From Macrostomum hystrix (Eukaryota; Animalia; Platyhelminthes): DNA of 64,000 bases. The position numbers were made by a program, and so were the translations under genes. The stretch lies in the NCBI GenBank assembly GCA_950097015.1, contig CATNEN010000041.1, positions 3,162,001-3,226,000 of the forward strand. Reading direction: 5' to 3'. This document shows positions 34,842-60,952 of the stretch, piece by piece; within the stretch, counting starts at the first letter, position 1; each line of letters begins with the position of its first letter. The notes beneath the pieces are model-generated. The model was not told the origin of the DNA. It was given only the letters and a program-made list of their open reading frames with translations, and did no database searches.

Positions 34842-35645
34842 TGAGATAGGGCACCGACTGTATATTTCTTAGAAACGTTTTCCCGCGAAAATCTAGTATT
34901 TTGTTTGAAATTCAACTTTTGTTTAAATGCACTAATTTGTTTTAAAAGCACCTTTTGTTTAAATGCACCGAATAATTATTGTTTGAATGAAGTCGCGGAA
35001 TGGTAGGAGAATTTACTATAAATACACGAGAGAAAACAGGGAGACAGACAACGTGTTAACGTGTTGTATACACATACGTTCTGATAAAGAAAGCTTGAAT
35101 CATTAAAGTGTTCGTGTTAAAGAGTTATTTGAAGAGACATTGCGAAAGAGAGTAATAAGAGTTAAAGATAGCTGTAACTCTAGATCCACTGGAAAGCCCT
35201 ATGAAACGGACTGAAGATTGAAATTGAAGACTGAGCTGAAGACTAAAATTGATGGTTAAACTGAATGATAATTGAAAGACTGATAAAGACGGATAAAGAC
35301 TGATAAAGACGGATAAAGACTGATAAAGACGGATAAAGACTGATAAAGACGGATAAAGATTGATACAAAGTACTTATAGAAATAACACAGTAAAGTTATA
35401 AGCAGAAGGAAATATAGAGGAAAGATACCGGCCATACTGAAAGTATAACGCTACCAGATTGAATACATAACGCTACCAATTTAAATTGAGATAAAGCGAA
35501 TAATTAAAAGACATTCATAAGATTGACAAAAGTATAAAAGGCCTGTAACAACTTTGGTGACAGCAGTAGAAATTAATTTAGACCTACGACAACTTTGGTG
35601 GCATTATTAAAGAGTAATATTGAATTTAGTAAGAGCCCTAGGACA
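34842..35645 (+). repeat. 5' LTR (804 bp)
   Basis: TGAGATAGGG...CCCTAGGACA; TATAAATA at 35017-35024; no difference from the 3' LTR seen by eye. Confidence 0.95.
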
Positions 35646-35649
35646 ACTT

Positions 35650-35662
35650 TGGTGGCAGCGGT
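35650..35662 (+). other. Primer-binding site, tRNA-Leu type
   Basis: TGGTGGCAGCGGT matches the first 13 nt of the complement of the tRNA-Leu(AAG/UAG) 3' end as known from other animals (TGGTGGCAGCGGTGGGAT). It lies 4 nt after the LTR end. The host tRNA sequence was not checked. Confidence 0.8.
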
Positions 35663-35685
35663 AAAGGATCTAGAAACAGCGCAAG

Positions 35686-36705
35686 ATGAATCAAGCACAA
35701 GATGCAATCGCTATGTTGGCAGAAGAGTTGAGAAATCGACTCGAGATTGGACCTATGCGTCATGTAAAAATTCAAAAGTTCACACCTGGACAAGATATCA
35801 GAATTTGGCTTACCGCCTTTGATCAACGCTGTGAAGCAGAAGGTATTGAGGAAGACAATAGAAAGCAAGAATTGTTGGCCAATTTAGACCTAACCACAGC
35901 TTTTGCCGCAGTGCAAAGATTGAATCTTCCAGATGATTTGGAATATGAAGAATTTAAAGACAGATTAATTGAACGATTCGGAAGAATCGGCAGTTCCGCC
36001 GAATTCCGTGAAGAATTCAGAGGACGAATGCAGAGTAAGAATGAGTCAGTTGAAACTTTCTCTGATTGTCTGATTGAATTAGCTGCTAGAGCTTTTCCAA
36101 ACATGAATATGGAGCAGAAGGAAGAAGAGATCGTGGAACAGTTTATTAAAGGAGTAAGAATATCCGCTGAAACGCGAGAGAAATTGATCTTTGCTCAGCC
36201 TGCTAACCTACAGGAGGCCAGACGAATGTTAAGACGGATGGAAGCTGCATGGAATATGACTCATCGGAACATCGGCATGAGAATGGCCAAAGGCGAGGAA
36301 GAACTTGAACGACGACGAAGCGAGCAAGATCGACTGGAGGAAGTCATCAGACAGCAGCAAGCTCAGCTCGAATTGCAGAAGAAGACACTACAAGAACTGA
36401 TGGCCAACAAACAGCAACAACAGACTTATGCTCAGGCTGTAAACTCGTACCGGCCAAATAGTCAGCAACAACAGCAATACCAGCAGCGTCAGCCATATCA
36501 GCAGCCGCAATATCGGCAGCAGCAATTTCAGCGACCGACACAGCAGCAATACCCACAGCAACAGCAGCAGAGGCAGTGGCAGTCCCAGCAGCAGCAGGCG
36601 AGACCTCCACTAACTTGCTACAATTGCCGTAAGACAGGACACATCGCGAAACACTGCAGAGCTCCTCGGCAGAACCAGCCGCAGGCGCAGAATCAGGGAA
36701 ACTGA
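35686..36705 (+). CDS. gag: Gag with CCHC zinc knuckle
   Basis: 339-aa ORF just after the PBS; Gln-rich linker; CYNCRKTGHIAKHC. Confidence 0.93.
   Translation: MNQAQDAIAMLAEELRNRLEIGPMRHVKIQKFTPGQDIRIWLTAFDQRCEAEGIEEDNRKQELLANLDLTTAFAAVQRLNLPDDLEYEEFKDRLIERFGRIGSSAEFREEFRGRMQSKNESVETFSDCLIELAARAFPNMNMEQKEEEIVEQFIKGVRISAETREKLIFAQPANLQEARRMLRRMEAAWNMTHRNIGMRMAKGEEELERRRSEQDRLEEVIRQQQAQLELQKKTLQELMANKQQQQTYAQAVNSYRPNSQQQQQYQQRQPYQQPQYRQQQFQRPTQQQYPQQQQQRQWQSQQQQARPPLTCYNCRKTGHIAKHCRAPRQNQPQAQNQGN
36696..36702 (+). promoter_or_regulatory. -1 ribosomal frameshift slippery site G GGA AAC
   Basis: X XXY YYZ heptamer directly before the gag stop. The pol frame is -1 relative to gag and open from 36702 to the protease. 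Confidence 0.85.
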
Positions 36706-39700
36706 TTCGTGAGGGACGAGATGCGAGGCCACGCCCCTCTAAAAGTACAGCCAGCGAAACTCAGGCCTCAATTAAACTGGCAAGTAATAAGCAGAAACCT
36801 AATGTAAATGATAATGTAAACTCTGAGAAAGTACAAACTGAATCTAGTGCAGAAAAGAAAGGTCGTGAAGCAGTTGTGAAAGGCGAGATTCGGAATCAGA
36901 AAGTAACATTTTTGCTAGACACTGGTGCAGGACATAACTTCCTAGGAAAGAACTCTTGGAAGAAGATGGTTAAAGACAATGAAATTGAGCCAAGCAATCG
37001 AAGAGTGACCACGTTTGATGGAGCAACTGTAAAGATTGCAGGAGAAGTAACTGTTAAAGTAAAATTTGGAGAAGTTGAAATCGAGACCGAATTTCTCTTG
37101 TGCCATCACGACTGTGACGATATCCTAGGGATGGAATTTTTCCAAGATTATTGCAATAATATTAACTTTGCCACAGGCATGCTTGTACTAAGAAGTAATA
37201 TGTGCATTCCAATTCAATTTACTAAATTGCCAGTTCGTGTTTGTCGAGTATATTGCTCTGAAAAAGTAATTGTGCCAGCTAATAGTGCACTTAGAATTTC
37301 TGTTAAATTGCCGAAAAATGCCGAAGCCAATTATGGCACGCCAATGACTATTGAACCAATCAGAGGACAGATCAACACCAAGAAAGGTACTTTGGATGTA
37401 ATACCGACTCTAGTAACCATGAGTAATGGAATAGGAGTCATTGAAGTTATTAATAAGCAGAGTGACGACATACCGCTATCGAGATCTACGATTATCGGAT
37501 TTGCCAAGCCATTGCAAGCTAAAGACTTAACTTACTATGCCGAGCAAGATCAAGCAGAAAAAGTCAAACCCAATGGACATGTGAAGACTGCGAGATGCGA
37601 GCAATTAAGCCAAGAAGATTGGATCACTGAGATCAATCTAGGAGAAAATCTGACTAATAGACAGAAAGACCAAGTTATCGAGCTGGTAAAAGAACACAGA
37701 GAAGCATTCTCTCAGACCAGTCAAGAAATGGGTCTGACCCACTTGGTGACCCACGAAATCTCATTGAAAGACACCACACCGGTTCGGATTCCTACCAGAC
37801 GGATTCCACCGCATTTGCAAAAACAAGTGGATGACCAATTAGACGACATGCTCGCTAAGAACTTGATAAGACCAAGCTATAGTACTTATTCAACACCATT
37901 GGTCATCGTACCTAAGAAGGATGGAACTATCAGAATTGTCAGTGATTTTCGAGTTCTAAACTCAAGAGTGGATTACTATCCATATCCTCTACCGAACATC
38001 CAGGAGACATTTTCACATTTAACCGGAAGCCAGTACTTCAGCAGCCTTGACCTTAATTCGGGTTATTGGCAAGTTCCTATAAAGGAGGAACACAAGTACA
38101 TGACAGCATTTTCTACGTTAACGAGAGGCCAATTTGAATATCAAGTCATGGCGCAAGGACTGTCTAATGCGCCCGGTACTTTTCAAAGACTGATGAACTT
38201 AGTTTTAACTGGCATTCAGCACAAGTTTGCCATGTCTTACATTGATGACATAGTGACTTACTCTAAGACTTTTGAAGAACATCTCAGTCATCTAAAGGAA
38301 GTATTTCAAAGATTGATAACAGCTGGATTGAAACTAAGACCTAAAAAGTGCAACTTGTTTCAGCAAGAATTAAAGTACTTAGGACATGTAGTCGGAGTCG
38401 ATGGAATAAGAACAGACCCGGCGAAGATCGAGGCTATTAAAACATGGCCAGTGCCTAAAGATGTTAAAGAATTAAGAAGCTTCCTTGGATTGTGCAATTA
38501 CTATTGCCGATTTGTTAAGAATTATGCTGATGCCGCACACCCATTATTTCAATTAACTAAGAAGGGAGTGCAGAATTTCAAGGAAAAATGGACTAAAGTA
38601 CATACTGAGTCATTTGAACTATTAAAACAAAAGCTAATGTCCACTGAAGTGCTTGCCTATCCAGAGTTTTCTGAGAATGAAAAAGTACGAATGGTCCTAG
38701 ATGTCGATGCTAGCGACAATAGAATCGGCGCCTGTCTTGGACAGATACAGTCCGACGGCACTGAAAGGCCGATTGCGTACTTTAGCCGAGCTATGAAAGA
38801 TTCTGAAAAGAGATATCCGATCACCAGAAAAGAGTTGTTAGCATTGGTTGATGGGATGAAGCACTTTCGATTTTATCTCATTGGCAAACGATTCTTAGCC
38901 CGCACTGATCACAAGGCGATCCTATGGCTTCTACGCCAGACTGAAGCGCAAGGAATTCTTGGTCGGTGGATCGAGCGGCTAAGCGAGTTCCAGTATGACA
39001 TCGAGCATCGTTCGGGCAGCAAGCACAGCAACGCTGACAGTCTATCCCGACGACCTGCTGAGACTGACAATACAAAGCCAACACAAATTGACCGAAAAAT
39101 GGACTCTGAATTAGAATTGAAAGGAAGTGAACCGAAGGTGAGCTTACCAGACAGCCAGGTAGGACTGATTCAGCCACCTGAAGAAATCGAGGAAACCGAC
39201 ACCGATGTCCGCGATGATCGTGTAATTGAGAAGGAGATGCCAGCAAAACAGTTGACTAGCAGAAGCTCACTGAAGCATCAAAGCTGTCAGACTGATCTGG
39301 AGATTCTCAAAGAGCAGAAAGTACAGGAAGATGACAAAGATGATGAAGATGATGATGATGTATTCGAAGATGCGAGAGATTACGTTGAAGATGAAGAAGT
39401 TGAAGAAGAGAGATGTCGGAAACTTCTTACTGATTATCTCGAGGTTCCACTCAAGAAGGAGCAGTTGGTGCAAGCCCAGCAAGAAGACTCCTCAGTGAGA
39501 ACACTGATAAATTGGAAGAAGAGTGCAGTAGAGAAACCGACAGGAGACAAATTGTCAGAAGAATTGAAGAAAATGTTAAAGTACTACGAACAGATGAAGT
39601 TCGAAGATGAGTTGTTGACGATTCAAGAAGAAGGAATCAGAAAAATTGTGTTGCCAAAGAGCATTGAAAAAGCAGTGTTTAGAGAACTGCATGACAGCCC

Positions 39701-41255
39701 ATTGGCAGGTCACCTAGGCCGTGATAAAACCACGCAGAGAGTGCGTGAACGGTTTTGGAGACCCGGACTAGTCACTGCAATTGAGAAGTACGTTTCAGAG
39801 TGTATAACGTGTTTAGAGAGTAAAGCGGGACAGCGTATCCCAGCACCTGTGCAGAATTTTCCGATTTGTGAGCCGTTTGAGCGCCTCCATATAGATTTTA
39901 TTGGACCTGTGTCCAAGGACAGCAGAAGAGGGCACAAGTATGTACTGACAATAGTCGATAGTACAACTAGATTCCCATTCGCTTTTCCGACCAGGAACCA
40001 GAAATCAGATACTGTAATCAAGATATTACAAGAAAGAGTATTCGCAGAATACGGACAATGCAAATGGATCCATACTGATAATGGAAAGTCATTTACTAGC
40101 CGACAATTTCAAGCATTTTGTGAGCTGTATGGGATCAAGCACACGTGCACCACACCCTACCATGCTCAAAGTAACGGCTTAGTTGAACGATTTAATGGAC
40201 AAGTCAAATCGATAGTTACATGTCTGATTAACAAGGATCACTCTGATTGGGATCTCATGATTCCAGCCGCGCTCGTAGCAGTGCGAACGAGTATTAATCA
40301 ATCTACCGGATTTTCGCCTCATTATCTATTATTTGGGCGTGAAGCAACTTTGCCCATAGACAATATAGTCAAAAGACCGCACGAATTCGCTAACTATCCT
40401 AGTTATGTAAAAGACCATGCCGAAAGATTGGAGAAAGCTAGTAAAATTGTCAAACAGAAGCTAGAGAAGATTAATGAACAAAGAAAAGAAAAGGCCGAAG
40501 TTGCCAAGAAGCCAAAAGAAATTATTATTGGAGGAATTGTATTGTTAAATAATCCGCAGTTACATCAAGATGAGAGTCATAAATTTCACAGGAAAAAGCG
40601 AGCCGCGTACCGAGTACTTGCTCAGTTATCCGACACAGTTTATCGTGTTCAGAGAGAAATCGAAGGAGAAAGAGTAGGAGAGAAATTAATTGTGCATAGA
40701 AACAACATCACACCAGTGCCAAACACACAAATCACATTACAATCCGCAGAACAAACAAGGAAGGGAGATCACAAAATTAGTCACACCACACGGTCAAAAG
40801 TTAAGGGAGGTCAGGCCACCTCAAATAAAAATAAACAAAATGTAATTGTCATTAATGAAGAAGAAGACGAATCCGAAGAAGAAGACAGAATAAGATGGAG
40901 AGCTAATATGCCAAATGAAGAATCCGAAGACGAAAACTATGCAGAACAGGAAGCAATCCCTGACAATGAAAACGAAAGGCAAGAAGAAGCGAATGAGTCA
41001 GAACAAGAAGAAACAGACAGCGAAATGGACAAGACTGAAGAAATGAACATGAGTGACTCAGAGATTGAACATGAAGAAGAAAGAAATGTACATACAGAAG
41101 GAGCCCATGGCTATAATCTCAGACCACGAAATGACAGGACTGAACAATTGAACAGGGGAGAGCCTACCCCAGGAAGAGGAGTGTTACGTAACACCCAGCC
41201 AGTCACTCACGGCTTCGTGCCTCGGGAACGATACAGAAGATATCTACCCCAGTGA
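36702..41255 (+). CDS. pol: Pol polyprotein (protease, RT, RNase H, integrase)
   Basis: LLDTGA protease; YIDD RT; LDVDASD..RPIAYFSR RNase H; HDSPLAGH..C..C zinc domain and RLHIDFIG/TDNG/NGLVERFN DDE integrase. No stops or frameshifts. Confidence 0.96.
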   Translation: MIREGRDARPRPSKSTASETQASIKLASNKQKPNVNDNVNSEKVQTESSAEKKGREAVVKGEIRNQKVTFLLDTGAGHNFLGKNSWKKMVKDNEIEPSNRRVTTFDGATVKIAGEVTVKVKFGEVEIETEFLLCHHDCDDILGMEFFQDYCNNINFATGMLVLRSNMCIPIQFTKLPVRVCRVYCSEKVIVPANSALRISVKLPKNAEANYGTPMTIEPIRGQINTKKGTLDVIPTLVTMSNGIGVIEVINKQSDDIPLSRSTIIGFAKPLQAKDLTYYAEQDQAEKVKPNGHVKTARCEQLSQEDWITEINLGENLTNRQKDQVIELVKEHREAFSQTSQEMGLTHLVTHEISLKDTTPVRIPTRRIPPHLQKQVDDQLDDMLAKNLIRPSYSTYSTPLVIVPKKDGTIRIVSDFRVLNSRVDYYPYPLPNIQETFSHLTGSQYFSSLDLNSGYWQVPIKEEHKYMTAFSTLTRGQFEYQVMAQGLSNAPGTFQRLMNLVLTGIQHKFAMSYIDDIVTYSKTFEEHLSHLKEVFQRLITAGLKLRPKKCNLFQQELKYLGHVVGVDGIRTDPAKIEAIKTWPVPKDVKELRSFLGLCNYYCRFVKNYADAAHPLFQLTKKGVQNFKEKWTKVHTESFELLKQKLMSTEVLAYPEFSENEKVRMVLDVDASDNRIGACLGQIQSDGTERPIAYFSRAMKDSEKRYPITRKELLALVDGMKHFRFYLIGKRFLARTDHKAILWLLRQTEAQGILGRWIERLSEFQYDIEHRSGSKHSNADSLSRRPAETDNTKPTQIDRKMDSELELKGSEPKVSLPDSQVGLIQPPEEIEETDTDVRDDRVIEKEMPAKQLTSRSSLKHQSCQTDLEILKEQKVQEDDKDDEDDDDVFEDARDYVEDEEVEEERCRKLLTDYLEVPLKKEQLVQAQQEDSSVRTLINWKKSAVEKPTGDKLSEELKKMLKYYEQMKFEDELLTIQEEGIRKIVLPKSIEKAVFRELHDSPLAGHLGRDKTTQRVRERFWRPGLVTAIEKYVSECITCLESKAGQRIPAPVQNFPICEPFERLHIDFIGPVSKDSRRGHKYVLTIVDSTTRFPFAFPTRNQKSDTVIKILQERVFAEYGQCKWIHTDNGKSFTSRQFQAFCELYGIKHTCTTPYHAQSNGLVERFNGQVKSIVTCLINKDHSDWDLMIPAALVAVRTSINQSTGFSPHYLLFGREATLPIDNIVKRPHEFANYPSYVKDHAERLEKASKIVKQKLEKINEQRKEKAEVAKKPKEIIIGGIVLLNNPQLHQDESHKFHRKKRAAYRVLAQLSDTVYRVQREIEGERVGEKLIVHRNNITPVPNTQITLQSAEQTRKGDHKISHTTRSKVKGGQATSNKNKQNVIVINEEEDESEEEDRIRWRANMPNEESEDENYAEQEAIPDNENERQEEANESEQEETDSEMDKTEEMNMSDSEIEHEEERNVHTEGAHGYNLRPRNDRTEQLNRGEPTPGRGVLRNTQPVTHGFVPRERYRRYLPQ

Positions 41256-41663
41256 TTTCGAGAACAATAGAGAACAATGGGAGCTCAGTTGACACAGATT
41301 TGCGTTAAAGTCAATGTTAATTGATTAAGATTTAAAATGAGATAAACTGAAAAATCAAATAAAAAGTAATCTGAAAAAGATATTGGAAAAGTAAAAACAT
41401 CAATGTATTCGGGAGAATGAGATCTGTAAAAAGAATCCAAACATGAAAGTATAACTGTAAATGATAAAGTCGGAAATTGAAATTAAATGAGTGTGATATA
41501 TGACATGGCAGAGTAAGGCTGTCAAAAGTGGCCCTCAGATCCCTAGGGAGCCCGGACACATTGATGCGGTCCAGTTTTCGCTCTATATAATAAGACCACC
41601 TAAAGGCCCGCCAGAGAAGAATCTTAAGACAGTGCCAAAGTGTGAAAATTGCAAACCCAAAGA

Positions 41664-42467
41664 ATGGATAACAACCTAGACGACTTCCTACAAGAATTGT
41701 TGGACGGCGGAGATTTTGCTCAAGAAAATATGGAGACGGCGCAAGAAAATATGGAGACGGCGGCACCAGAGCGAGTAGCGACGCGCCCCAAGCTGCCAGT
41801 CGCTACTGCAATGGCCACGAAAAGACCGCGCACACCATCACCGGTAGCGGTTAAGCAGGCGAAAACGGCACAGCCAGCAGGGATGACAAGCAGCGGCCGC
41901 CTCAAATCGGTAATTTGTTTGAGCACGGCAGGACCTGTTCGGACAGCGACCGAGGCATCCCACAGGCGATATTCGGCTGGGCCGGCACTGCAGCAATTGC
42001 GGCCCGCACCGCTGGAAGCCAACGCTAGAAGGGAGCCGCAGCCGACGCAGGCCAAACCGCAGCCGACACAGGCCAAGCCGCAGCCGACACGGGCCAAGCC
42101 GCAGCCGATGCCTGTCGTGCCGCAGTCTACGCCGCCTGTGCCGCAGAAACAACCGACGCCAGCAGAAGAAGAAAGGGAGAAGATGGTTCACGACCTGACA
42201 GAATACATGGAGAAGGTGGCATTCCACACATACGAACTGTCATACCCGCAACGAACTCAGATATGGAAAAGTATGCTGGTACTGAAGAGTCTGCCGCAGC
42301 ATCAGGCCGTTACCGCACTTCAAGCCGTCGCCCACAATGTACATCAGAGCGCAGCAACCGGCGAGGCGACTCTACATCGGAAAGTGACTAACATGGAATT
42401 TAGATGGGCCTTCCGTCAAATCGGCTGGCCTTATTATCGAGTGTTACCCGCCCCATGCGCATTTTAA
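41664..42467 (+). CDS. Extra ORF3 of the gypsy element, 267 aa, unknown function (not env-like)
   Basis: Uninterrupted GC-rich ORF between pol and the PPT, ATG at 41664. Acidic N-terminus, Pro/Gln/Ala-rich middle, predicted helical C-terminal domain. TATATAA at ~41584 upstream. Confidence 0.6.
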   Translation: MDNNLDDFLQELLDGGDFAQENMETAQENMETAAPERVATRPKLPVATAMATKRPRTPSPVAVKQAKTAQPAGMTSSGRLKSVICLSTAGPVRTATEASHRRYSAGPALQQLRPAPLEANARREPQPTQAKPQPTQAKPQPTRAKPQPMPVVPQSTPPVPQKQPTPAEEEREKMVHDLTEYMEKVAFHTYELSYPQRTQIWKSMLVLKSLPQHQAVTALQAVAHNVHQSAATGEATLHRKVTNMEFRWAFRQIGWPYYRVLPAPCAF

Positions 42468-42634
42468 AGTGAAGGACATTTATGGACTTAATTTCTTTTT
42501 GGTGAAGGTTTATGTTGTTGTGTTAGTACCATATTTTTGTAATTTTGTATATTTTGTGCCTATATGTTCACCTATAGTTCTGTTTTTGTATATAGTCATA
42601 TTTTCACTTACAGTATGTGCATTCAATTCTGACT

Positions 42635-42644
42635 AGTAGGGAGG
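42635..42644 (+). other. Polypurine tract
   Basis: AGTAGGGAGG ends 5 nt before the 3' LTR. Confidence 0.6.
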
Positions 42645-42649
42645 TCAGT

Positions 42650-43453
42650 TGAGATAGGGCACCGACTGTATATTTCTTAGAAACGTTTTCCCGCGAAAAT
42701 CTAGTATTTTGTTTGAAATTCAACTTTTGTTTAAATGCACTAATTTGTTTTAAAAGCACCTTTTGTTTAAATGCACCGAATAATTATTGTTTGAATGAAG
42801 TCGCGGAATGGTAGGAGAATTTACTATAAATACACGAGAGAAAACAGGGAGACAGACAACGTGTTAACGTGTTGTATACACATACGTTCTGATAAAGAAA
42901 GCTTGAATCATTAAAGTGTTCGTGTTAAAGAGTTATTTGAAGAGACATTGCGAAAGAGAGTAATAAGAGTTAAAGATAGCTGTAACTCTAGATCCACTGG
43001 AAAGCCCTATGAAACGGACTGAAGATTGAAATTGAAGACTGAGCTGAAGACTAAAATTGATGGTTAAACTGAATGATAATTGAAAGACTGATAAAGACGG
43101 ATAAAGACTGATAAAGACGGATAAAGACTGATAAAGACGGATAAAGACTGATAAAGACGGATAAAGATTGATACAAAGTACTTATAGAAATAACACAGTA
43201 AAGTTATAAGCAGAAGGAAATATAGAGGAAAGATACCGGCCATACTGAAAGTATAACGCTACCAGATTGAATACATAACGCTACCAATTTAAATTGAGAT
43301 AAAGCGAATAATTAAAAGACATTCATAAGATTGACAAAAGTATAAAAGGCCTGTAACAACTTTGGTGACAGCAGTAGAAATTAATTTAGACCTACGACAA
43401 CTTTGGTGGCATTATTAAAGAGTAATATTGAATTTAGTAAGAGCCCTAGGACA
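42650..43453 (+). repeat. 3' LTR (804 bp)
   Basis: Same sequence as the 5' LTR, offset 7808 nt; followed by the TSD GTCA. Confidence 0.95.
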
Positions 43454-44400
43454 GTCAGCAGCTTCAATTTAAATGACAATATCCTGATAGTCTTGTTTGG
43501 CATATTGGCAAGTATATTATGATTGTTTTCCCTTTTGTTTATAATTTAGCAATACTTTTATTGATATCAATGAAAGGGTTACCAAAGTTTTTGTTACCAA
43601 ACTGTCTTTTGCTTGTTACCAAAATGTCTGTTACCAAAGTGTATGTTACTGAAAGAACATAATTCAGTGAAAGTGGGGGGAATGTCTTTTTTGTTCAAAC
43701 TGATATTAGCCCAATTTTATTCAATGAATAGACTAGGGCATGACTAGGACATGAATGCATTAAGCTATTCATTTGAACAGTCAACCAGTTTTATGAAAAA
43801 ATATTAACTTTTTGATTAAATGTCTTGAGAGCAAAGTGATCCACTCTACCAAAGCCAGTCCTAAGCCTAGCTGCAAAAGTATAAAGGTTCAAATAAACCT
43901 GCCAAACTTTCCCTTGAAAAGCTGGCCCCATGCTGAGAGATCATTTTTGCATCCTTGGTTGTTTTTATCTGTTTATACAGAATCTCTAATGGAAATTTGA
44001 ATTCTCAGCTAGGGTTAGGCAAAAGTTTCAGTAACACTGCAAACTAGGCTAGAAAAGTATTAATCGATTTCAAGTTGTCTAATTTCTAAATACTCTGTTG
44101 AAGTGTACCGATTTTTAGACCATTACAACTGTGAAATGACTGTCACAATAATGTTTTGCACCAAAAAACTACAATGCTACTATTGCTTTTGTCGCGCTAT
44201 GTGGAACAGTGGACATGCAAAATGGAACGGCCCATGAATTCTATGACCAAGCATTTGAATTCACATGAGAAAGTAAGCCATAGACAACTCAAATTGTCAT
44301 GCTATATGGAACGATGAGCCAGAATAGAAGGAACGATTTTAGTTTTTCACAGAGACAACAACACGCTTTCATTTTCTTTCGTTTGATCAGTTAAGCAATA

Positions 44401-45300: not shown

Positions 45301-45682
45301 CAAGTTCCACCAGAAGTAGTGTTACATTGAGCAGTGGAGATTCATGCTACTTGAACGAGAGGCGACTGAAGCTGTTGGTCAAGCAATCACTGCTGACAAG
45401 TGCGCTGGCTGGGAGCTGCGCTGCAATCGATTGTTTCGATTGTGTTTGCAGCGACATCTGTTTTAGGGGTTCAAATTTTGTAACTGATGCTTCAATTTCA
45501 GACTTATAATAAGATTCACTTGAATGCAATTCTGCTTCTGCTTGCTTTTATTCTTTCTGTAAATAAAAGCTAAAATCGTTCCTTCTATTCGGGCTCATCG
45601 TTCCACATAGCATGAAAATTGGAGTTGTCTATGGCTTACTTTCTCGTGTGAATTCAAACGCTCGGCCATAGAATTCAATGGG

Positions 45683-47002: not shown

Positions 47003-47220
47003 TGGGCCGTTCCGTTTTGCATGTCCACTGTTCCACATAGCGCGACAAAAGCAATAACTACATGTATCTATACAAATTAATAATTTTTCAATACTTTTAA
47101 TTCAAGTTACTCAGTAAATAGCACTTACTGAATAAACTTGTGCTTTTGTTAAATGCATTTTACATTTTCCTGCTGCACCTTTCAGCCTACAGTTAGCGGC
47201 TCGTGTGCATTTGTTAAACA

Positions 47221-50200: not shown

Positions 50201-52311
50201 CGTGTGAGGCCGAGGCCGCATGCGCCGGCAACTGCCTGCCCGCGGCCGCAGCCTCACCTGTGCAGCCTGGCCGCCTGCTTCCAGTGTTCCCTGCGACTGG
50301 TGCTCCCGACTCCGTTGAGCAAACTTCTCCGGCACTGCCAACGCCTACGCCACCCTCGTCTCCTAAAGTTCCCGTCTGCGGCCTCCGCAACCGCCGGCAG
50401 CAGCCGCGGAGCCCGGAAAAGCAGCCTCAGCCGCAGCAGGCTAAAAGGCGGAAGCCGCAGCTGAGCCAGCAGCAGCTGCTAGAGAAGCGGCGCCGCAAGC
50501 TGTGCCGGCCCGGCACATTGTGGCGCTGCCCGCCTCGCGCCATCTTCCGGCCCTTCCTGGAGGCCATGGACGAGTTCAACATGATTCGCGATGGCGACCG
50601 CGTGCTGATCTGCTTGTCTGGTGGCAAAGACTCACTCAGCCTGCTGCACGCGCTGCATCAGTACCAGGCCTACACTGATCGCACCCCGGGTCCCCGCTTC
50701 CAGCTCGCCGCGTGCACCGTGGACCCAATCAGCAACTCGTACGACCCATCGCCACTAATTGGGTACCTGGAACGCCTGGGCGTTACCTACTATTTTGAGC
50801 GCCAACCAATCATGGAGGAGGCGGCAAAGTAAGCCCTATCTGGTAGCGATTATCGCTGATTGGATCGGATGTTCACCCTTTATTCATGGCTAGGCCAGGA
50901 CCAACCCATATTCAGGGCTAGGCCAGGACCAACCCGATATTCAGGGCTAGTCCAGGACCAACCCGATATTCAGGGCTAGGCCAGAACCAGTCCTATATTC
51001 AGGGCTAGGCCAGGACCAACCCGATATTCAGGGCTAGGCCAGGACCAACCCGATATTCAGGGCTAGGCCAGGACCAAACCGATATTCAGGTCTAGGCCAG
51101 GACCAAACCGATATTCAGGGCTAGGCCAGGACCAACCCTTATTCAGGCTAGGCCAGGACCAGTCCTATATTCAGGGCTAGGCCAGGACCAACCCTCCATA
51201 ACCTCGGTTCTTGGTGGCAAGTGCCGAGCTTCCCTTCATTGTCCTTTTTGTCCAGCCTGTTCGTTTTAAATCTTGTAAGTATTTGGTACTCTTTAGATTA
51301 TTATTCTTCTTCTTCTTATTATTATTATTATTATTATTATTCTTCTTCTTCTTCTATCCGTGAAAGAGTGACGGAAACCATTTTTATCCACCTGTCCGCA
51401 TTCAGTGATGTGCACCACAAAGGTTAAACTTTGTTCCATAGTTTTAGCATGAGTCTGGGGCCTCCGGCACTCATCATGATCTTGCATCGGGTGAGCTGCC
51501 AAGTTTTGAGCTTTAGTATCTTGTTTAAGGAAGCTCTCAAACTGTGGCTGGATAAATTTCTGTATTTCCCGTCTGTATTTCCTAACTATGAGCATGGCGT
51601 CAATCCCATACAGAATCAGCACTGCTGTTTGTGTAGAGCTCTGCTTTTTGTCTTGATTAAAAGCTTCTTAGGAAAAAGTTTAGAACCCACTAAGGTCTCA
51701 GCGGTGTCCTACCCTGCTGTCCTTCCTGTAGGGTGGACTGCGACTCCATCTGCGCCTACTGCGCCCGCATGAAGCGCGGCCGCCTGTACGCCACGTCCAG
51801 GCTCCACGGCTACAACGTTCTGGCGATGGGCCAGCACCTGGATGACCTGGCAGAGAGCTTCCTCATGTCCGCCTTCCACAATGGCTGCTTGCGCACTATG
51901 AAGGCCAATTACACCGTGGAAACCGGTGACCTCCGCGTCATTCGGCCCTTCGTATACGTGCGCGAGAGCAGCACCAGGGAGTTCGCGGACCTGGCCGGCC
52001 TGCCCGTCATACCGGACAACTGTCCGGCCTGCTTCCGGACACCCACAGAGCGATTCCGCGTCAAGCAGCTGCTGGCCGAGCAGGAGTGCCTGTTCCCCGA
52101 CCTGTACTCCAGCCTGCGGGCCTGCATGCGGCCGCTGTTCGGCCTGCCCGGCCGGGGCGCCGCTCTCGCTGCGGCTGCCGGCTCCCCGTCCTCTGAGCCT
52201 CGGAGCCTGCGCAGCCTGCTGCCCAGCCTGGCCTCCGTACTGATGTTTCTGCTGACCCTGGCCCTGGCTGCCTACGTCTACCGAGTACAGCAGCCGGCCA
52301 GGGCTGTGTGA
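47221..52311 (+). CDS. Fusion protein: class-V PLP aminotransferase/cysteine-desulfurase-like + TtcA-type tRNA 2-thiocytidine synthetase-like domain, with C-terminal TM helix (~1020 aa)
   Basis: Exons 47221-47378, 47534-47852, 47969-48724, 49353-49834, 50061-50828 and 51732-52311 are all phase-compatible (3063 nt). N-half: YCDYTASG, GNTHT, FDYAAAAPY, SFHKFVGG (PLP Lys), RGGCACAG. C-half: LSGGKDS PP-loop, CAYCARMKRG, GQHLDD, VIRPF, CPAC. The exon 4 donor (GTTTTT) is weak. Confidence 0.88.
48940..49297. repeat. 28-bp minisatellite, ~12.5 copies (intron 3)
   Basis: Unit gatgcacttcca(c/a)tccattgggattcga. Confidence 0.93.
50886..51193. repeat. 29-bp minisatellite, ~10.5 copies (intron 5)
   Basis: Unit agggctaggccaggaccaacccgatattc. 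Confidence 0.92.
51297..51355. repeat. Compound (TAT)n/(TCT)n microsatellite
   Basis: Alternating attattatt and tcttcttct blocks. Confidence 0.9.
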
Positions 52312-53379
52312 GCACGTGCTCACTGCATTGTTGGTTTGTGTGGCACGGTTGTTGGTACCCTAGTTCCACACGCAAGCAATCCCGTTGTCTGGAATGAACT
52401 TTAAAAAACTTTTGTTGTAAGTCTTGTGCGCTTTTACACACTTCAATTAGTTGGCTTGCCGGTATTCGTACTCCACTGACAGAACAATTCCCGCTTCTTG
52501 TATTCAAATAAGCTTCTTCAGTTATATCACTGCACGTCACTACCTGTCCGTCTTTTTGTTTTGTGACGTGTCTAGTTTTTAGATTTCGCCTGCTGAATAT
52601 GAATTTCGACATCGCGAGTGTTTTTAATAGACGTAGTCTGCTTTATGTTTTTCATGAGTTTGTTGTTTGTCTTCACTGAATTACCGTGACACCTGATATC
52701 TGTTTTCCTAGACACTCGCTTTACACGGCTTTATGGTCCCGTCAGCATGTATGCACCTCAATATCTGTAACCGGCTGTCTAGCACACTCCTATTTAGCAA
52801 TCAGCTGGGAAAATTTATGAGGTCTCTGAGGTAAAAGTGGTAAAGGGAATTTATCACTTTATTTTCCGTGGCAAAACTCGGACTGTTGCTTTCTGTGCTT
52901 TCTTCTTCCTCATGCCCACATGCGAATCTTGCTGTCGGCCCTTATGTTTAGTCACAGAGAGCAGTCAGCGGTCGGATGCTTCTTGTTCCTTCTGTCAGCT
53001 TTGAGCCATTCCATTCCTGGCCCTTGGCTTTCGATTTAAGAATGAACCTGTGTCAGCTACATGTTATAATTGTCGATTTTAGACGATATGTTTATTTTTA
53101 GAGCATCGGCGATGGTATTTGTTTGTGCTTCAAAAAGTACACCCACGCGAAAGCTGTGCGCCAAGCAAATTTTGCTCGATTGGCTTGATTTATTGAACTC
53201 ATTGAATTCGGCGTTCGGTGTGCCTTTCTGTATTGTTCCTTTTTTTACATCCGGTATCTAAACAGGAAATTATCTTAGTATTATGTAGCGCCTGTGTTTC
53301 TCAGGTCGACTGCTCGCCAAGGCCGTTGTGTTTGAAGCCGTCTCACCCTCCTCCCCCGGCCCTGCTCAGGGTTGAGGAT

Positions 53380-53840
53380 CTGGGGTAGAGGAGCGGAGGG
53401 TAGAGGAGCGGGGTAGAGTAGCAGGGCCAGTGGAGGAGCAGTGCCAGTAGAGGAGCAAGGGTAGAGTAGCAGGGCCTGTGGAGGAGCAAGGGTAGAGTAG
53501 CAGGGCCAGTGGAGGAGCAGGGCCAGTAGAGTAGCAGGGGTAGAGGAGCAGTGGGTAGTGGAGCAGGGGTAGAGGAGCAGGGGGTAGTGGAGCAGGGGGT
53601 AGAGAAGCAGGGCCATTAGAGGAGCAAAGGTTGAGTGGCAGGGCCAGTAGGGGAGCAGGGGGCAGAGTAGCAGGGGTAGAGGAGCAGTGGGTAGTGGAGC
53701 AGGGGGTAGTGGAGCAGAGTTAGAGGAGCAGAGGTAGAGAAGCAGGGCCAGTAAAGTAGTAAGGGTAGAGTAGCAGGGGGCAGAGGAGCCGGGGTAGAGG
53801 AGCTGGTGTAAAGAAGCAGGGCCAGTGGGTAGAGGAGCCT
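53380..53840. repeat. Degenerate purine-rich repeat (gggtagaggagca family)
   Basis: Irregular 13-26-nt units of gggtagag(g/t)agcag. Confidence 0.8.
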
Positions 53841-55586
53841 GTATACAAAGAAAAATTTATATTCACCCAGAGCTCGATTCTTAATACTATTAAGAATAAA
53901 CATTATTTAAAAAAACTGCAAAGACCAATTGCCTCTGAAGTTCAACTAAAATTTCTGACCAACTGATCAGCTTGATTGCAACAGAGGTTTTGTCAATTTT
54001 CATTGCGATTGTTTCAGTAGAAGTGTCTGCCTGCGAATGTCAAGCTGGCTCTCTTAAATACACTGGAGATACAAACACACTTTAACCTTGAATAACTCGC
54101 AGAAGCTTTGATTATTCAGTCTGAAATTTTACAAATCTAGTCAACTCGATTGTATCAGAGGTTTTGTAAATTTTGATTGCAATTGTTGCAGTAGAAGTTT
54201 ATTTTTGAAAGTACAAGAAAATACACTGCGGAGATAGGAGCAAACTTCAAAGCTGTGTAATAAATAATATTTTTTGGAACGTTATCTTAGTTGCATCCGA
54301 AGATCTGTTAAGTTTCGCTGTAATTGAATGGTTATTTTTTAAGTTACAATGCTCTTGTTTGAATGTGAATGTCAATCAGGAAATTAATACGTGACGAGTA
54401 AGCGCAATGAGCACTAGATTCTTAAAAGCTCTGCATTTAATGAACGAACCGCTTAGTGTATCTTTAAATATATTTAATAAAATGAAAACTATTACACTGT
54501 TTCACCAGATGCTTGTATTTTTTGTCATAATAATTAATATTAGTTTCATTTTAACACTGAAGCATCACTTTAAGTTAAATCCAAAGTAAGGCAACGTATC
54601 TATGTAAACAATTAAAACAGTAGCTATTATCTATTAGTTGACAAATTACGAAATGACTGTAAAATATGCGTGAGCTTTTTTTGTCTAGTCTTCTGTGCAA
54701 TAAGTGGTCCTTATTGCCATGGTACCATAGCAATAGGTCCTTGTTTGCAAGTTATTGGCATGATACAGCGGCAATAATACTGCTTGGCATAATGTCATGA
54801 TACTGAGGCCGGCAAAGTCCTACTTTGAGGCCTGAGGCCTATTATTTAGTTTCATCATAATAACTTATATTTAACTATAAAATGTAGTAAAAAGAAAAAT
54901 GAGCAGACTACAAAAATCAATGCTTTATAGAGGATAGGCCCTAATAACTAAAAAATAGTGCAGTACAGTAGGCCTAGCTAGATAATTATTATTAGTTGTA
55001 TAGGCTACTATTTTGCTCTGGTTAAAGGCCAGTTATGGCTGTTATGCCAATAAGAATGCAAATATATTTTGTGTAAAGTAATAAAACAAATTCATTAAAA
55101 ATGGATAGGAAAGACAGTAGGTCTAAAATGAACAATTCATTTTAATGAATAAGTATTAGTATTGTAGGAGATAAGTGGGTGGTGAAATTTTGAAATACTG
55201 AAATAAAAAGACAAAAAATATGAGACAGAAAAAACTGTTTAAAGCTAGCATTTAACTTAAGTTTGTGCAAGATTTGACCAAGTATTTTAATGACAAGCTA
55301 TTCACAAGTTTGCTTTCATGAACTTATTTAAACATTTGCTGCAAATGTTTATTGTACAAATGATTTGCATTAAGCAAGATTGATAAATATATAATTTGTG
55401 TTTTGGTAAATAAATTAATTTAATATAATAAAATTCACCATTGGCATGAAGAATGATGATAGATTTGTCATAGTGCTTCTGTCTTTAATTATTGTTTGAA
55501 TAATAGTGCTGAGAATATATTTTTTATATATATTATATATAGGCCTATATATATATATATATATATTATTAAATTTTTATATATTA

Positions 55587-56544
55587 TGTAACAGTTAGCC
55601 ACTTTATAAATACGTTCTTTCTATTATAAAAATTGTAAAAATAAATAAAATCAAAAATGCGCCAAAAAAATAATTTTTGTTCATCTTTGTACCGCATTGA
55701 AAGTAATGCTTATGTAAATAATTTTGTTTTAATACTGTATCCTGTAAATAATACTTTGTAAAATATTATCGTTTTAACAAAATGTCAATTTGCTCTGTAT
55801 AAATAGCCGCGAGTTTTGACCAGGAAAAATAAAGGGTTGGGACAAACAAACCAGAGTGTTAAAGAGTCTAAAGTGTCTCTGAAGTTTTCTTGTAAGAAGT
55901 TGAAGTTAAAGACAAGTGTTTTAAGGTGTTTTCAAGAGTTTAAAGAGTGAGTTTAAAGTGAGATAATTTGAAGTGTGTAAAGAGTTGAAATTGAAGGAGT
56001 TTTAGTGTGTTTGTAAAGAGTTTTTAAGTGTGTTAAAAAGCAAATTTCCGAAGGTATTGCATTGTGTTATTCATTTTAAGAAGAAATAGCAGTGAGAGAT
56101 ATAATCAGAATTATACTCAGGAATTATACTAAGAATATTACAGAAGAGAAACTGCTAAACTCTAATCTCGGGGACGCCTAATTGACTGGAAATGTGTACA
56201 GTTGCCTAGTTACCGCTCGTGCATATATAAACGCTACCATTTGAGAAGTTAAAACGGCCCATTTAAGGACCGCCATTTAAAATTATCTATTAGTTGAGTC
56301 AACAGCAGTGGAATTATTAAAATAGCCCAAGAACAACTTTGGTGGCATTCAGTAGAATTAAGTAAAAAGAAGTAAAGCCCTGCAACAACTTTGGTAACAG
56401 CGGTGGGATAGTTAATTTCCACCTGTAACAACTTCGGTGTCAGCGTCAGCGATAGAATAAAAGTTAAACTATTTAAATAAGGCCTGCAACAACTTTGATA
56501 ACAGCGGTGGGATTAATATTGAATAAGAGGAAAGCCCTGCAACA
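55587..56544 (+). mobile_element. Solo LTR (958 bp) of a related gypsy family
   Basis: TGTAACAG...CTGCAACA ends; 4-bp TSD ATTA (55583-86 and 56545-48); TATAAATA at 55798. Shares the aacgctacca motif and ACAACTTTGGT cassettes with the full-length element's LTR. Confidence 0.82.
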
Positions 56545-57037
56545 ATTATATTATTTTAAAAGAATTTCTTGGTAGTATATGTGTGTTTAGTTAGTCTAAG
56601 TATTGTATTTAGTTGGTTTAAGTATTGCATATTTAGTTATTCTGGGTAGAGTATTTAGTCAGTCTATATAGCATATTTTGTTATTCTGTCCAACTACTTT
56701 TATTGTATATATGTATTTCTGAGTATAGCCTATAGGCTTTCCAAAGAGTATTACTAATGATCTCAAGTGTACAGCAATATCTTCTACTTCTCTCTTGAAT
56801 TCTCTTTGTATCTGTCTCTATATGTTTTATAAAGAATAATAGAACACTTCTGAGAATTATATACAAATTCAGTATAAAACCACGTCCATTTTCTTTTGCT
56901 ATACTCAGCTGTATTTATACTTATTTTGTAATAAAAATGTTTACACATTTAAACAAATTATTATATGGTATAACAAATATTCATTCATTAAATAGGTCAC
57001 TTAAAAAATATATTTTACTGTATAGTTTTTAAGAAAT

Positions 57038-57995
57038 GTGATACTCAAAAATGATATATTACAGATTGATTAAGTAACATTTAGGTTGAGGAAAAAAAGT
57101 AGGAAAATAAAAAAAGATAACAAGCAAGAGCAAGTTTTCAACAATTAAAACTTAGAAGGCAATTAGAATTAGAATTACAATTACAATTAGAAGGCAATAT
57201 AATGAATCAAGTAAAGGGGGAACAAAAGAAATTAATAAGTTTCAATATTACAACTCCCAAGATGATTAAAAGGTTTGGGTATTGAGTCACAGTGACAAAC
57301 AGCAAGCAGGGTATTAAATGCTCCAAAAAAGATTATGATTACAAAATAGCATTTAGCATAGGATTTCAGTTGGAAATAATTTTAATTTAGGTTATTTTGA
57401 GTTTTGCAAATCTCATCAATAGTTTCTAATTCTGATTTCATTTTACAGCATTTACACATAATGATAAAACTTTAAGGAAATAATCTGACAAAAATGTATT
57501 TCTTGAGAAACAGAGCTTTAAAGTTTTATATAAATATATGTTTAACCATCTATAACAGTTGGTATTCATAGTACCAGTATGAACATGCTTATATTAGTAG
57601 TAGTAGCATTGTTTGCAAAATATGCTTTGGTGTCCGCAACAAATAAAAATTGAATAAAATCAATCAAGCATTAACTATTTTGGGAATTTATAAATAAAGC
57701 TCAACAAAACTCAAGCAAGTAAATGACTCAAATAAAAACATGTTTTAACTAAAGCATTACATTTTTTCTTGTTTATAAATATTTTAAATATGAGATATGG
57801 TGCCGGTTTCAAAATATACAAGAAAACAGATAAGTTAACTTAAAGCTTGAGCATGCTAGAGATAATATTTAAGGTACTTAAGTAATGAGTGTAAAAGATG
57901 CCAAAGTAGGCATTGAAAGCACAGAGAGTTTAGGAAAAATGAAACTTTGTTTCCTCAACCTAATCAATCTGTAATAGATAATTTTTGAGTATCAC
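57038..57995. mobile_element. MITE-like element with ~55-bp imperfect TIRs
   Basis: gtgatactcaaaaatgatatattacagattgatta...ggttgaggaaa (57038-57095) is the reverse complement of tttcctcaacctaatcaatctgtaatagataatttttgagtatcac (~57948-57995). No TSD established. Confidence 0.65.
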
Positions 57996-58299
57996 CTCTT
58001 CTATTGTTTGTTCGCAATGCAGGATTGGTTCAATTGGGTTGTTCCGATTTTTTATCGGGTTTATGTTTCGTTTATCAGGACATGATCAGGACATGCTTGC
58101 ATGAGTTTAGTGTTGCTAGTGTTTAATTTTTTAAAGTTTTGTTTTGTTTTGTTTGTTTCCTTTGACTAGATTGCTCAAAGATATGCCCTGATTGACTGCA
58201 TCTTGAGGTGAAAGCTCAACAATGACTAGCATAATCCACAGTAAGCATAGGTCTTCTCACCTTCTGATTTGCAGCGCATCATCTGAACTCTGACCGCCA

Positions 58300-60952
58300 A
58301 TGTCAGCGCCATCGTTTGCCCAAGCGGCATCCGGCCCACAACCAAACCGCGATGACCAGGAAGAGCAGCTTGACTTTGTTGACGATGTTCCTCAACAGAC
58401 ACCAGCACAGCCTTCTGTCCCTGTTGACGAAGAAGGCGATGATGGTGAAGCCTCAGACACAAGCGCCAGCGACGGCGAGCTTCGTTCCAGTGATGATAAT
58501 GAGGATGGCGAGGTTCGAGGAGACGGAGAGAAGGACTTTGAGGAGGGCGAGGTCCTGTCCGAGGACGAGGCAGCCGCAGCTGCTGCAGTCAAAGCAGCAG
58601 AAGAAGCAGCAGCCAGTCCAGTTCCGGCAGAGTTGGAGGCGCAAGCGGAGCCTTCAAAACCCAAGACGGAGACACCGTGGGAGAAGGCCCTTCGAGTGGC
58701 TCGGGAGCGCCGCGCCAAGGCGCAGGAACGTCGGCTGGTTGAGGCGGAGGCCTTTAAGGAGAAAAAGCTGAACCTGCCTGCTGCCAGGGATGAGGCTCTC
58801 GCAAAACAGCTGTCGGCGGCGACCGTCTTGACCCCAAAACCCAAGCCCCCACCGCCGCCGCCACCGCCACCGCCACAGCCGGCAGCGCAGAAAGCCAAGA
58901 AGGCACAGGCGCCGCGTCTGCCAACGGCTCTTGTTGCACGGCCGGAACCTGAGCCGATGTTCTGCGAGTACTACATGGCGGCTTCAGAGGACGCAAGGCG
59001 GAAGCGCTTCTTGCCCAGAGACATCGATGATGTTGGAGACGACAGCATTGGTGAATCAGCCGCTGCTGAGGCTGCTGCCGCCGCAGCCGCTGCAGTGGCA
59101 GCTGCCGAAGAGAAGGTGAGTAAAATAATTAACGTAATACAATGGTTATTTGTTATGATTATATTATTTATACTTCTGGAATCGGCTCACCTACGCGACA
59201 TTGCTTTAATGCACTGGAGGCCCTGATGCATAATTTTTTATGTTCTTGCTGTGTCAACTATGAAATTGTCTAAGTTGTGGTTCCACGGCAAACCGTCTGC
59301 AGGAGGAGGACCTCGAATACTACCGGGACGTGTTCCGCGAAGTCCAGGAAACTCGCCGATGGCGCCGCGAGATGGAGAAGCGGCAGCAGGAGGCCGCAGC
59401 GGCTGCCAGCGCAAGAGCCGCTGAATCTGCCAGTGCCAGCGATAGTGCCACCGCAGCTTTAGGAGCTCCGTCTGGCCGGCACCACCGACACGTGCAGCAG
59501 CCGGCGCAGCATCATCGGCGCCATCAGCACACAGAAAATGGCGAAGGTTCGGCAAATGCTGGTTACCAGGCGGTTGGTCAAAGACGCGGCCGACCTCGAC
59601 ATCCAGGAGACTCTGCTGGTGGCTCGGCCACCTGGCTCGATCCCTGGGACCGCAACCGGGCCGGGCAGCGTCGGCGCCGGCAGGGCGGTTCCACGGACTC
59701 TAGCAGCAGCTCGTCGTCCTCCTCTTCGCACTCCTACCGCTCCTCTTCTTCATCCTCATCCACTTCGTCAACATCCTCCTCGTCAGCGGCCTCGTCAATG
59801 CGCCGCCCTGGTGGCCGAGACGATCGGCCACCACCGCCAGCGCCCGCTGCACAGGCAGAGCGCCGTCGAGGTGCACCGCTTCCCGCCGCCTACAGAGACG
59901 GCGCTGTTGCAGGTGTGCCCGACTCGGCCAGCCGACAACCACTGACAGCTCAGCGTCGCCGGTCAGACTCTGCCAGCTCTGATTCGTCCGCTTCGTCTTC
60001 TTCCTCTTCTTCATCATCATCTTCCTCGGGTTCTTCCTCCAGCTCCGAGGGCTCTTCCTCCACTTCTTCCGAAGAAGGCGGCGGTGAGGTACACCCGTCT
60101 GGAGGTCCGACTGAATCCACCGAGCGACGCCAGAAGCAGCCGCACCAGCCGCCAGCGGACGGCCAACAGGGTGGGAAGCTCCGCTCGCACGCTGTTCTCC
60201 CGCCGCCCTTATCTTCTCAGCAGTCAGATGAAAGCCGGCACGCAGGCAGTCGCGCTACAGCCTCGGCAGCGCCCCTTGGTCATCGCAAGCCGCCTCCTCC
60301 AGCCCCTCCACCGCAGCTGCAGCCGCAGCAGTTGCAAGATCGAAAGCGTCGACCTAGTCCATCGGACAATCCCGGCAAGCGACTGCGGCCAACTGAAGTG
60401 GGCGACGCCAGAAAATGTAAGCGCGAACCTCTTAATGATTATTGGTTATCCCTGCTTTGTAGTGCAATAGTAAGTGTAAATTTTATCGATGAAATAAATC
60501 GTAGGTCAACGAGAATTTTGTTTCTCGGTTGGCCAATCGCTAGCTAAGATTCCACGGGCTAAGATTCCACGGGCACTGTCGCGACAATTACTAAGCATTT
60601 ATTTGTGCACCCAGCGAGTCCGAATTGATCTGCCTATATAACTTTGACGCGACTCGGCAAGCCTAGTTCAGTGCTGTGCCCCGCCCCATCCTGAACTTGA
60701 TCTAGCGCCTGTTTCTGCGGTCCCCACAAATTTCACCCGCAACCACCCACAGCCCGCGACCCGTCTTCTCGGCCGCCGGCCACAGCTGCGGACAGTGCGG
60801 AGTCAGACGCGGTGGCCAATCGGAAGCAGCGATCATCCACAGCGCTGGTTCGCAAAGAGCAGCTGCTGAAGCAGCTGAAGGCAGTCGAGGACGCCATCAG
60901 CAAGAAGCGTGCGAAGATGGATGCCAGTGGACAAAAGACTGCGGGTCCTTGA
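58300..60952 (+). CDS. ZC3H18: ZC3H18-like nuclear cap-binding-complex/exosome adaptor (709 aa)
   Basis: Exons 58300-59115, 59303-60416 and 60753-60952 are phase-compatible. Acidic N-terminus with FEEGEV; TPWEKALRVARERRAKAQERR..AFKEKKLNL resembles human SAWERGLRHAKE..DFEEKRF; poly-Ser tracts; C-terminal RKEQLLKQLKAVEDAISKKRAK resembles human RREELLKQLKAVEDAIARKRAK. Confidence 0.82.

Follow-up and report, generated by a model that had tools for sequence, protein, structure and literature searches.

An array of putative replication-junction copies in long terminal repeats of Ty3/gypsy retrotransposons of Macrostomum hystrix

Retrotransposons of the Ty3/gypsy type (Metaviridae) canonically have long terminal repeats (LTRs) with TG...CA ends, a 4-bp duplication of the target site, and a complement of the 3' end of a transfer RNA (tRNA) a few bases past the 5' LTR. 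A primer site for tRNA-Leu has been reported to be common in several insect Ty3/gypsy clades (PMC13524379). Here, we describe a 64-kb stretch of DNA from the flatworm Macrostomum hystrix (contig CATNEN010000041.1, positions 3,162,001 to 3,226,000; termed the window), in which a probable solo LTR (LTR B, family B) contains, at its 3' end (positions 56296-56544 of the window), an array of cassettes resembling this junction of LTR end and primer site. An intact element of the same type (element A, family A) lies about 20 kb away and carries such an array as well. The ends, the length of the duplication and the presumed tRNA complement agree with the canonical arrangement. However, the junction is present three times in family A and five times plus a remnant in family B, with the extra copies located inside the LTR. 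In addition, a linker of 4 nt separates the CA end from the primer site here, and the inverted repeat extends 3 nt beyond both LTR ends.

Tandem repeats within LTRs and leaders, such as the enhancer repeats of U3, are regulatory, have units of tens of base pairs and are made by template switching or slippage. The array shares with them a unit length of tens of base pairs and a number of units that differs between related elements, but it is the replication junction itself that is repeated, together with sequence whose canonical place is outside the LTR. Yeast Ty3 and Ty1 possess multipartite primer sites, in which separate stretches are paired, each with another arm of a single tRNA. In the present elements, too, more than one stretch of the element RNA is complementary to the primer tRNA, but all copies complement the same tRNA 3' end, so that they would compete rather than cooperate. 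The 18-nt 3' end of tRNA-Leu is known as an abundant fragment in mammals (PMC10591036), and two cassettes of LTR B, named B2 and B4 below, are near-complements of it. The likeness to the targeting of LTR elements by 3' tRNA fragments in mammals (PMC7472051) is one of sequence alone, and the cassettes of family A lack the distal half. Compared to a CRISPR-like array, the locus has repeats that are identical at 17 to 31 of 33 positions, a spacing of 41-61 nt, A+T-rich and partly homologous spacers and an animal host, and it does not qualify as such an array. A minisatellite test showed most spacer pairs to be no more alike than shuffled sequences and one block of two cassettes to be 76% alike. 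We deal here with an ordinary retrotransposon family that has an unusual, inherited multi-junction unique 5' region (U5). Literature searches returned no description of junction or primer-site copies inside LTRs, which is weak evidence of novelty, older papers on retroelements being mostly outside their coverage.

Junction cassettes in LTR B and element A

In the region 56296-56544, ACA triplets of the type found at the LTR end finish at positions 56335, 56387, 56430, 56491 and 56544, with spacings of 52, 43, 61 and 53 nt. Each of the four internal triplets is followed by ACTT and then by a primer-site-like string starting with TGGT, CGGT or TGAT. The ACA ends, the spacings, the ACTT and the four strings had been listed in an earlier note on this DNA, together with a decayed remnant at about 56300; all of these agree with the sequence, the remnant being located at 56301-56314. 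The internal cassettes are referred to as B1 to B4 and the remnant as B0; in element A, A0 to A2 denote the copies within the LTR and A3 the working site (Table 1). The array is a degenerate tandem with units of 41-61 bp, whose core is composed of the last ~11 nt of the LTR, the 4-nt linker ACTT and the start of a primer-binding site of the tRNA-Leu(AAG) type.

The degenerate 15-base motif ACAACTTYGRTRDCA, which spans ACA, ACTT and the next 8 bases, was found nine times in the 64-kb window when at most one mismatch was allowed. From shuffled sequences 0.08 matches were expected, and no shuffle gave nine. The matches are located at 35548, 35589 and 35643 (5' LTR and primer site of element A, spanning 35548-35657), at 43356 and 43397 (3' LTR of element A, spanning 43356-43411) and at 56333, 56385, 56428 and 56489 (LTR B), and are thus all confined to the 3' ends of three LTRs. 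A looser 12-mer search of the window revealed no additional copies. The interpretation of the cassettes as copies of the LTR-end/linker/primer-site junction of a tRNA-Leu-primed element is supported.

To describe conservation, seven cassettes were anchored on ACA and the share of the commonest base was determined for each column. It was 0.81 for the last 12 bases of the LTR and 1.00 for the ACTT linker; within the primer site, it was 0.86 for nucleotides 1-8, 0.66 for nucleotides 9-13 and 0.54 for nucleotides 14-18, and in the spacers it was 0.52-0.58. Spacers between units of one LTR are no more alike than shuffles, a test that is weak on 15-35 nt of A+T-rich DNA, and this is the reason for the repeat-and-spacer look of the array. 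The short units B2 and A1, which are weakly alike, form an exception. Tandem Repeats Finder reported no array at 56296-56544, which argues that the units are old and diverged.

Candidates other than a replication junction were also considered for the array. The array regions of both LTRs fold less stably than shuffled sequences (z +1.4 and +1.6) and gave no stable RNA structure, so that a structured-RNA reading was dropped. ARAGORN found no tRNA gene in the window, and Rfam gave no match at E ≤ 1 for the array region. A tRNA gene, a tRNA pseudogene or a tRNA-derived short interspersed element was ruled out, as only the 3'-terminal 8-19 nt of a tRNA are present, and these as complement.

The LTRs of element A have TG...CA ends, a length of 804 bp each and not a single difference between them. 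Pfam searches recovered a zinc knuckle in gag and, in pol, the domains of protease, reverse transcriptase, RNase H and integrase in this order. The best match of pol to a solved structure was yeast Ty3 Gag-Pol (2e-99), and its closest relatives in the protein collection were two proteins of Macrostomum lignano with 65% and 50% identity. The insertion looks recent and the element looks intact. Its working junction is the last member of the array and is divided by the LTR boundary, and the internal cassettes are identical in both LTRs. The terminal inverted repeat reaches 3 nt past both LTR ends (AGT/TG ... CA/ACT, with the slash at the LTR boundary; 42645-42652 and 35643-35649), and the LTRs are separated from the purine tract by 5 nt and from the primer site by 4 nt. 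This arrangement suggests that more bases than the usual two may have been trimmed at integration.

Primer site, history and origin of the array

The 3' end of tRNA-Leu(AAG) used as reference was taken from the literature, namely from probes and a 3' tRNA fragment (PMC7997516, PMC6103689, PMC10591036); it is mammalian and may differ from the tRNA-Leu of the host. The working site A3 matches the complement of this end at 13 of 13 positions, after which the match ends, and A1 and A2 match it at 11 and 9 of these positions, respectively. For B2 and B4, the counts of 16/18 and 15/18 with exclusively G>A mismatches, which had been made earlier from the sequence, were reproduced with the published Leu(AAG) end. 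Altogether, the 11 mismatches of A1, B0, B2 and B4 to the tRNA complement are all G>A changes, perhaps resulting from five to six independent events, and A makes up 35-40% of the plus strand. This pattern would fit change gathered while the cassettes passed through reverse transcription. The primer is presumably the tRNA-Leu of the host.

Plus-strand strong-stop DNA copies 18 nt of the primer tRNA. Since B2 and B4 span 18-19 nt of the tRNA complement, they should once have been live primer sites or be copies of one. Cassette B3 had been likened to a Leu(CAG/CAA)-type sequence, and its start does match this type at eight of nine positions; a single substitution, however, separates it just as well from the Leu(AAG) type. 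As B3 also has an internal duplication of 6 nt, a second tRNA species is unneeded.

The last spacers of LTR A and LTR B have an 11-mer in common, which occurs nowhere else in the window (0.04 expected); in each family, exactly 20 nt lie between its end and that of the LTR. Because of this shared 11-mer in the same place, at least one internal cassette is taken to predate the split of the families and to have been inherited. Family B is presumably related to the intact element A. The proposal of the earlier note that the multi-cassette layout is a maintained trait of the lineage with variable cassette number is supported by the comparison of two cassettes in A with four in B and by the shared 11-mer, and an accident after insertion would not account for it.

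Within LTR B, the block formed by the B1 unit and the B2 core aligns with that formed by the B3 unit and the B4 core at 76% identity over 83 columns (z 10.8). The cores of B2 and B4 are identical at 31 of 33 positions, and B0, B2 and B4 have two G>A changes from the tRNA complement in common. The near-identity of B2 and B4 and the derived changes shared within a duplicated block show that the array grew at least partly by ordinary duplication of internal copies that had already been mutated, and not by the addition of a new primer site at every step. Cassette quality alternates along the arrays, with B1 and B3 being poor and B2 and B4 good, and A1 good and A2 poor. The alternation is seen in the primer-site part and, by direct reading, also in the part from the LTR end. 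Decay is strongest only in A0 and B0, far upstream. An age polarity with older and more decayed cassettes upstream, which had been suggested as a check, is therefore at best partial: it holds for A0 and B0, whereas good and poor cassettes alternate elsewhere. All-versus-all alignments of the 41-61-nt units were too short and too A+T-rich for a tree, as lenient scoring inflated identity and strict scoring lost power, and the history of the array was read instead from shared derived characters and one block comparison.

We consider it rather probable that the region 56296-56544 represents the end of U5 in the presumed solo LTR, with an array of copied replication junctions, which would mostly be relics and would have arisen by duplication and distal priming, followed by block duplication. 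The primer site normally lies outside the LTR, and the LTR sequence downstream of the R region is whatever stands between R and the site of tRNA priming. Copies of the primer site are, however, found inside both identical LTRs of the young element A, and they were therefore copied along with R-U5 when this element last replicated. We propose that a segment across the LTR-end/linker/primer-site junction was duplicated at least once and that reverse transcription was then primed at the distal copy. The proximal junction would thereby have moved into U5 and would have been copied into both LTRs. As the sequence relationships show, the array later grew by ordinary block duplication in U5 (B1-B2 versus B3-B4), for which no further shift of the priming site would be needed, and the copies decayed under the G>A-biased substitution typical of the A-rich plus strand of retroelements. 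The linker is presumably part of the unintegrated DNA end that is trimmed by integrase, which would explain its invariance in cassettes that were once termini.

Boundaries, feature table and surroundings

The 3' end of LTR B is set by the terminal ACA at 56544, beyond which neither ACTT nor a primer site is present. As 5' end we prefer 55587, since it yields a 4-bp ATTA duplication of the same length as that of element A; an alternative boundary at 55493 would be accompanied by a 5-bp ATTAT duplication. About 0.5 chance matches of 4 bp are expected in the zone searched for the boundary, and the region 55587-56544 is accordingly termed a probable solo LTR. Between the two candidate 5' boundaries lies a (TA)n microsatellite (55515-55584). 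The likeness of LTR B to LTR A is limited to the last ~330 bp; outside the cassette zone, the identity per column is 0.51 compared to 0.49 for shuffles, in agreement with the earlier observation that the remainder of LTR B is hard to align.

Table 1. Features of the two retroelement insertions, with positions in the window. Matches are given relative to the tRNA-Leu(AAG) complement.
Feature	Position	Strand	Details
Element A, intact Ty3/gypsy LTR retrotransposon (8612 bp)	34842..43453	+	4-bp GTCA on both flanks
5' LTR of element A	34842..35645	+	Internal cassettes A1 (35540-35567) and A2 (35581-35605); decayed A0 upstream
Working junction of element A	35646..35662	+	ACTT linker 35646-35649; 13-nt primer-binding site 35650-35662
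gag of element A	35686..36705	+	339 amino acids; CCHC zinc knuckle; no breaks seen
pol frame of element A	36633..41255	+	Protease, reverse transcriptase, RNase H, integrase; -1 frame, 73-nt overlap with gag; no breaks seen
Purine-rich tract, putative plus-strand primer site	42635..42644	+	Separated by 5 nt from the 3' LTR downstream
3' LTR of element A	42650..43453	+	Same cassettes (43348-43375, 43389-43413); ends with ACA, no primer site beyond
Left target-site duplication ATTA of the solo LTR (probable)	55583..55586		
Probable solo LTR, family B (958 bp)	55587..56544	+	TG...CA ends; Ty3/gypsy retrotransposon
Cassette B0	56301..56314	+	Decayed primer-site remnant, LTR-end part gone; 10/14 to positions 5-18, 4/4 mismatches G>A
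Cassette B1	56325..56349	+	LTR-end core, ACTT and 10-nt primer-site start; 10/18, bases 1-8 match
Cassette B2	56377..56409	+	LTR-end core equal to terminal core, ACTT, 18-nt primer-site copy; 16/18, two G>A
Cassette B3	56420..56453	+	LTR-end core, ACTT, diverged primer-site copy with 6-nt internal duplication; 10/18
Cassette B4	56481..56514	+	LTR-end core, ACTT, 19-nt primer-site copy; 15/18 with 19th base matching, three G>A
Last unit of LTR B	56514..56544	+	Shared 11-mer and terminal LTR-end core; positional homologue of 35615-35645 of LTR A
Right target-site duplication ATTA of the solo LTR	56545..56548		

Between pol and the 3' LTR, element A contains a third open reading frame (ORF) (41649-42467, 272 amino acids), which is rich in proline and glutamine and includes 21-bp tandem repeats at 42034-42146. 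No Pfam family was matched by this ORF and it is too small for an envelope gene, so that element A was not assigned to Errantivirus, the env-carrying Ty3/gypsy elements. Each LTR of element A also contains a tandem repeat with a period of 10 bp (35275-35365 and 43083-43173), consisting of ~9 units of two alternating 10-mers that differ by one base; a counterpart is absent from LTR B.

Two A+T-rich blocks (30000-48000 and 53850-58150; 29-43% G+C) interrupt a window that otherwise has 50-60% G+C, and each of them holds a retroelement insertion. In the block upstream of the solo LTR, a 58-bp direct repeat with 86% identity is present, whose copies are 174 bp apart (53967-54024 and 54141-54198). 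An ORF at 44401-44943 showed homeodomain-like HTH_32/HTH_23 matches, as found at the N-terminus of transposases of the Tc1/mariner or pogo type, and is probably the remnant of a DNA transposon in the A+T-rich block that also took element A. Host exons at 201-1571, 9950-10867, 20007-20870, 47523-48859 and 62001-63879 were each searched separately; their products are a Shaker-type potassium channel, an IMD-domain protein, a class-V aminotransferase and an F-box/LRR protein. The ion-transport exon and the T1/BTB exon of the channel are ~8 kb apart on the minus strand. These exons mark the host as an animal, and the two M. lignano relatives of pol point to a macrostomid flatworm or kin as the probable host; an exact look-up of a neighbouring host ORF (58300-59226) gave no record. 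Four G+C-rich minisatellites (28000-28824, 48874-49386, 50847-51194 and 53369-53836, with periods of 25, 28, 29 and 14/31 bp, respectively) are located in or beside host coding-like sequence.

Relics, usable sites and other explanations

The simplest reading of the internal copies is that they are relics. Some of them may still be able to act as alternative priming and LTR-end sites, because the LTR end, the linker and bases 1-8 of the primer site are the parts that are best kept. Several points weigh against the explanation by duplication and distal priming followed by decay. It is based on two LTR families in one 64-kb window, and we infer distal priming from what reverse transcription can and cannot copy. 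The better conservation of the junction core compared to the spacers suits selection as well as it suits relics, so that "mere relic" is the weakest part of the explanation. If the host had an isodecoder with the "AA" variant seen in B0, B2 and B4, the match of B2 would be perfect, and two of the changes regarded as derived would no longer count as such. The arrays of A and B can be aligned in three registers of about the same strength (E ≤ 0.002), and only the last unit could be anchored; the orthology of the other units and any order of events are therefore tentative. Finally, the cassettes could lie in R rather than in U5; several candidate poly(A)-signal hexamers are present in both LTRs, as expected in A+T-rich DNA, and are thus uninformative on the R/U5 border.

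A tentative alternative, to which we give a smaller but appreciable chance, is maintained redundancy, with tRNA-Leu priming at any of several working cassettes that each have an LTR end recognised by integrase; the boundary could then shift between successive replication cycles, and a damaged or blocked site would be backed up. The best-kept columns are exactly the parts that such a site needs, namely the ACA end, the invariant ACTT and nucleotides 1-8 of the primer site, and since element A works with a site of no more than 13 nt, A1 with 11/13 as well as B2 and B4 are little worse. The layout has also persisted in two families with LTRs that elsewhere resemble each other no more than by chance, and the less stable folding of the array relative to shuffles, although not significant, would leave it accessible. 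On the other hand, the internal cassettes were not used in the last cycle of element A, as its LTRs would otherwise be shorter, and within the orthologous last unit conservation is lowest in the primer-site part (A2 9/18 versus B4 15/18), whereas the 11-mer of the spacer is perfect. The likeness of the cores across families is partly forced by the same tRNA and related integrases, and the comparison comprises two LTRs only. In general, the conservation pattern fits use, whereas the non-use in the last cycle of element A and the decay of A2 compared to its counterpart B4 fit relics. The further idea that the array is a selected set of interchangeable junctions in this flatworm lineage, by which the LTR changes in whole units and priming survives a mutated or fragment-occupied site, appears rather unlikely to us.

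The other explanations have far lower probabilities. 3' tRNA-Leu fragments are not known in the probable host group, and a decoy function, in which cassettes in U5 RNA absorb such fragments and so keep them from blocking the working primer site or silencing the transcript, is very unlikely. It could build on the finding that 3' tRNA fragments target the primer-binding sites of LTR elements in mammals (PMC7472051) and on B2 and B4, which retain distal bases able to pair with the 5' part of the 18-nt Leu fragment. This distal part is, however, absent from every cassette of the evidently young family A, where the cassettes and the working site match over 9-13 nt only, and the sequence lends no support to the decoy model of the earlier note. 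Local slippage, i.e. a microsatellite-like expansion on the host side at the locus of LTR B after insertion, could account for the tandem layout, the varying unit length, the 6-nt internal duplication of B3 and the block duplication. It is largely refuted and most unlikely, as the same layout is present in both identical LTRs of element A and so passed through reverse transcription, as the unrelated-looking LTR B has it too with a homologous last unit, and as the failure of Tandem Repeats Finder to call an array indicates old and diverged units. Short motifs repeated at a spacing of 40-60 bp are a common regulatory layout in LTRs and leaders. This speaks for a cis-regulatory array in which the repeated core is a binding site for a transcription factor or insulator protein and overlaps with the junction by chance, but we give this reading an equally slim chance: in the repeat, the parts of the junction recur in unchanged order and orientation, and the extension of B2 and B4 by 18-19 nt into the tRNA complement is not predicted by a binding-site model. 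We attach practically no credence to a record in which each cassette logs one past episode, like a repeat-spacer memory. The resemblance is superficial, consisting of conserved repeats between dissimilar spacers, and both the repeat-spacer comparison and the record model put forward earlier do not hold. A single tRNA type is found throughout, the spacers are A+T-rich filler of 15-35 nt and partly homologous, and decay alternates instead of following a single direction. The near-identity of B2 and B4, their two shared G>A changes and the block similarity mark them as duplicates of each other that arose by ordinary duplication.

It is usual to regard the boundaries of LTRs as set by a single primer site and a single polypurine tract. 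The copies of the primer site within both LTRs give direct evidence, from sequence, of at least one downstream move of the priming site, by which the old junction was carried into U5, and such a downstream shift of priming is one route of LTR growth. If the internal copies are usable, LTRs of one family could differ in length by steps of a unit, the elements would have a built-in backup against damage to the primer site or its blocking by small RNAs, and LTR-annotation software that assumes a single primer site might be misled. If they are only relics, the copies would still be a convenient marker for element lineages.

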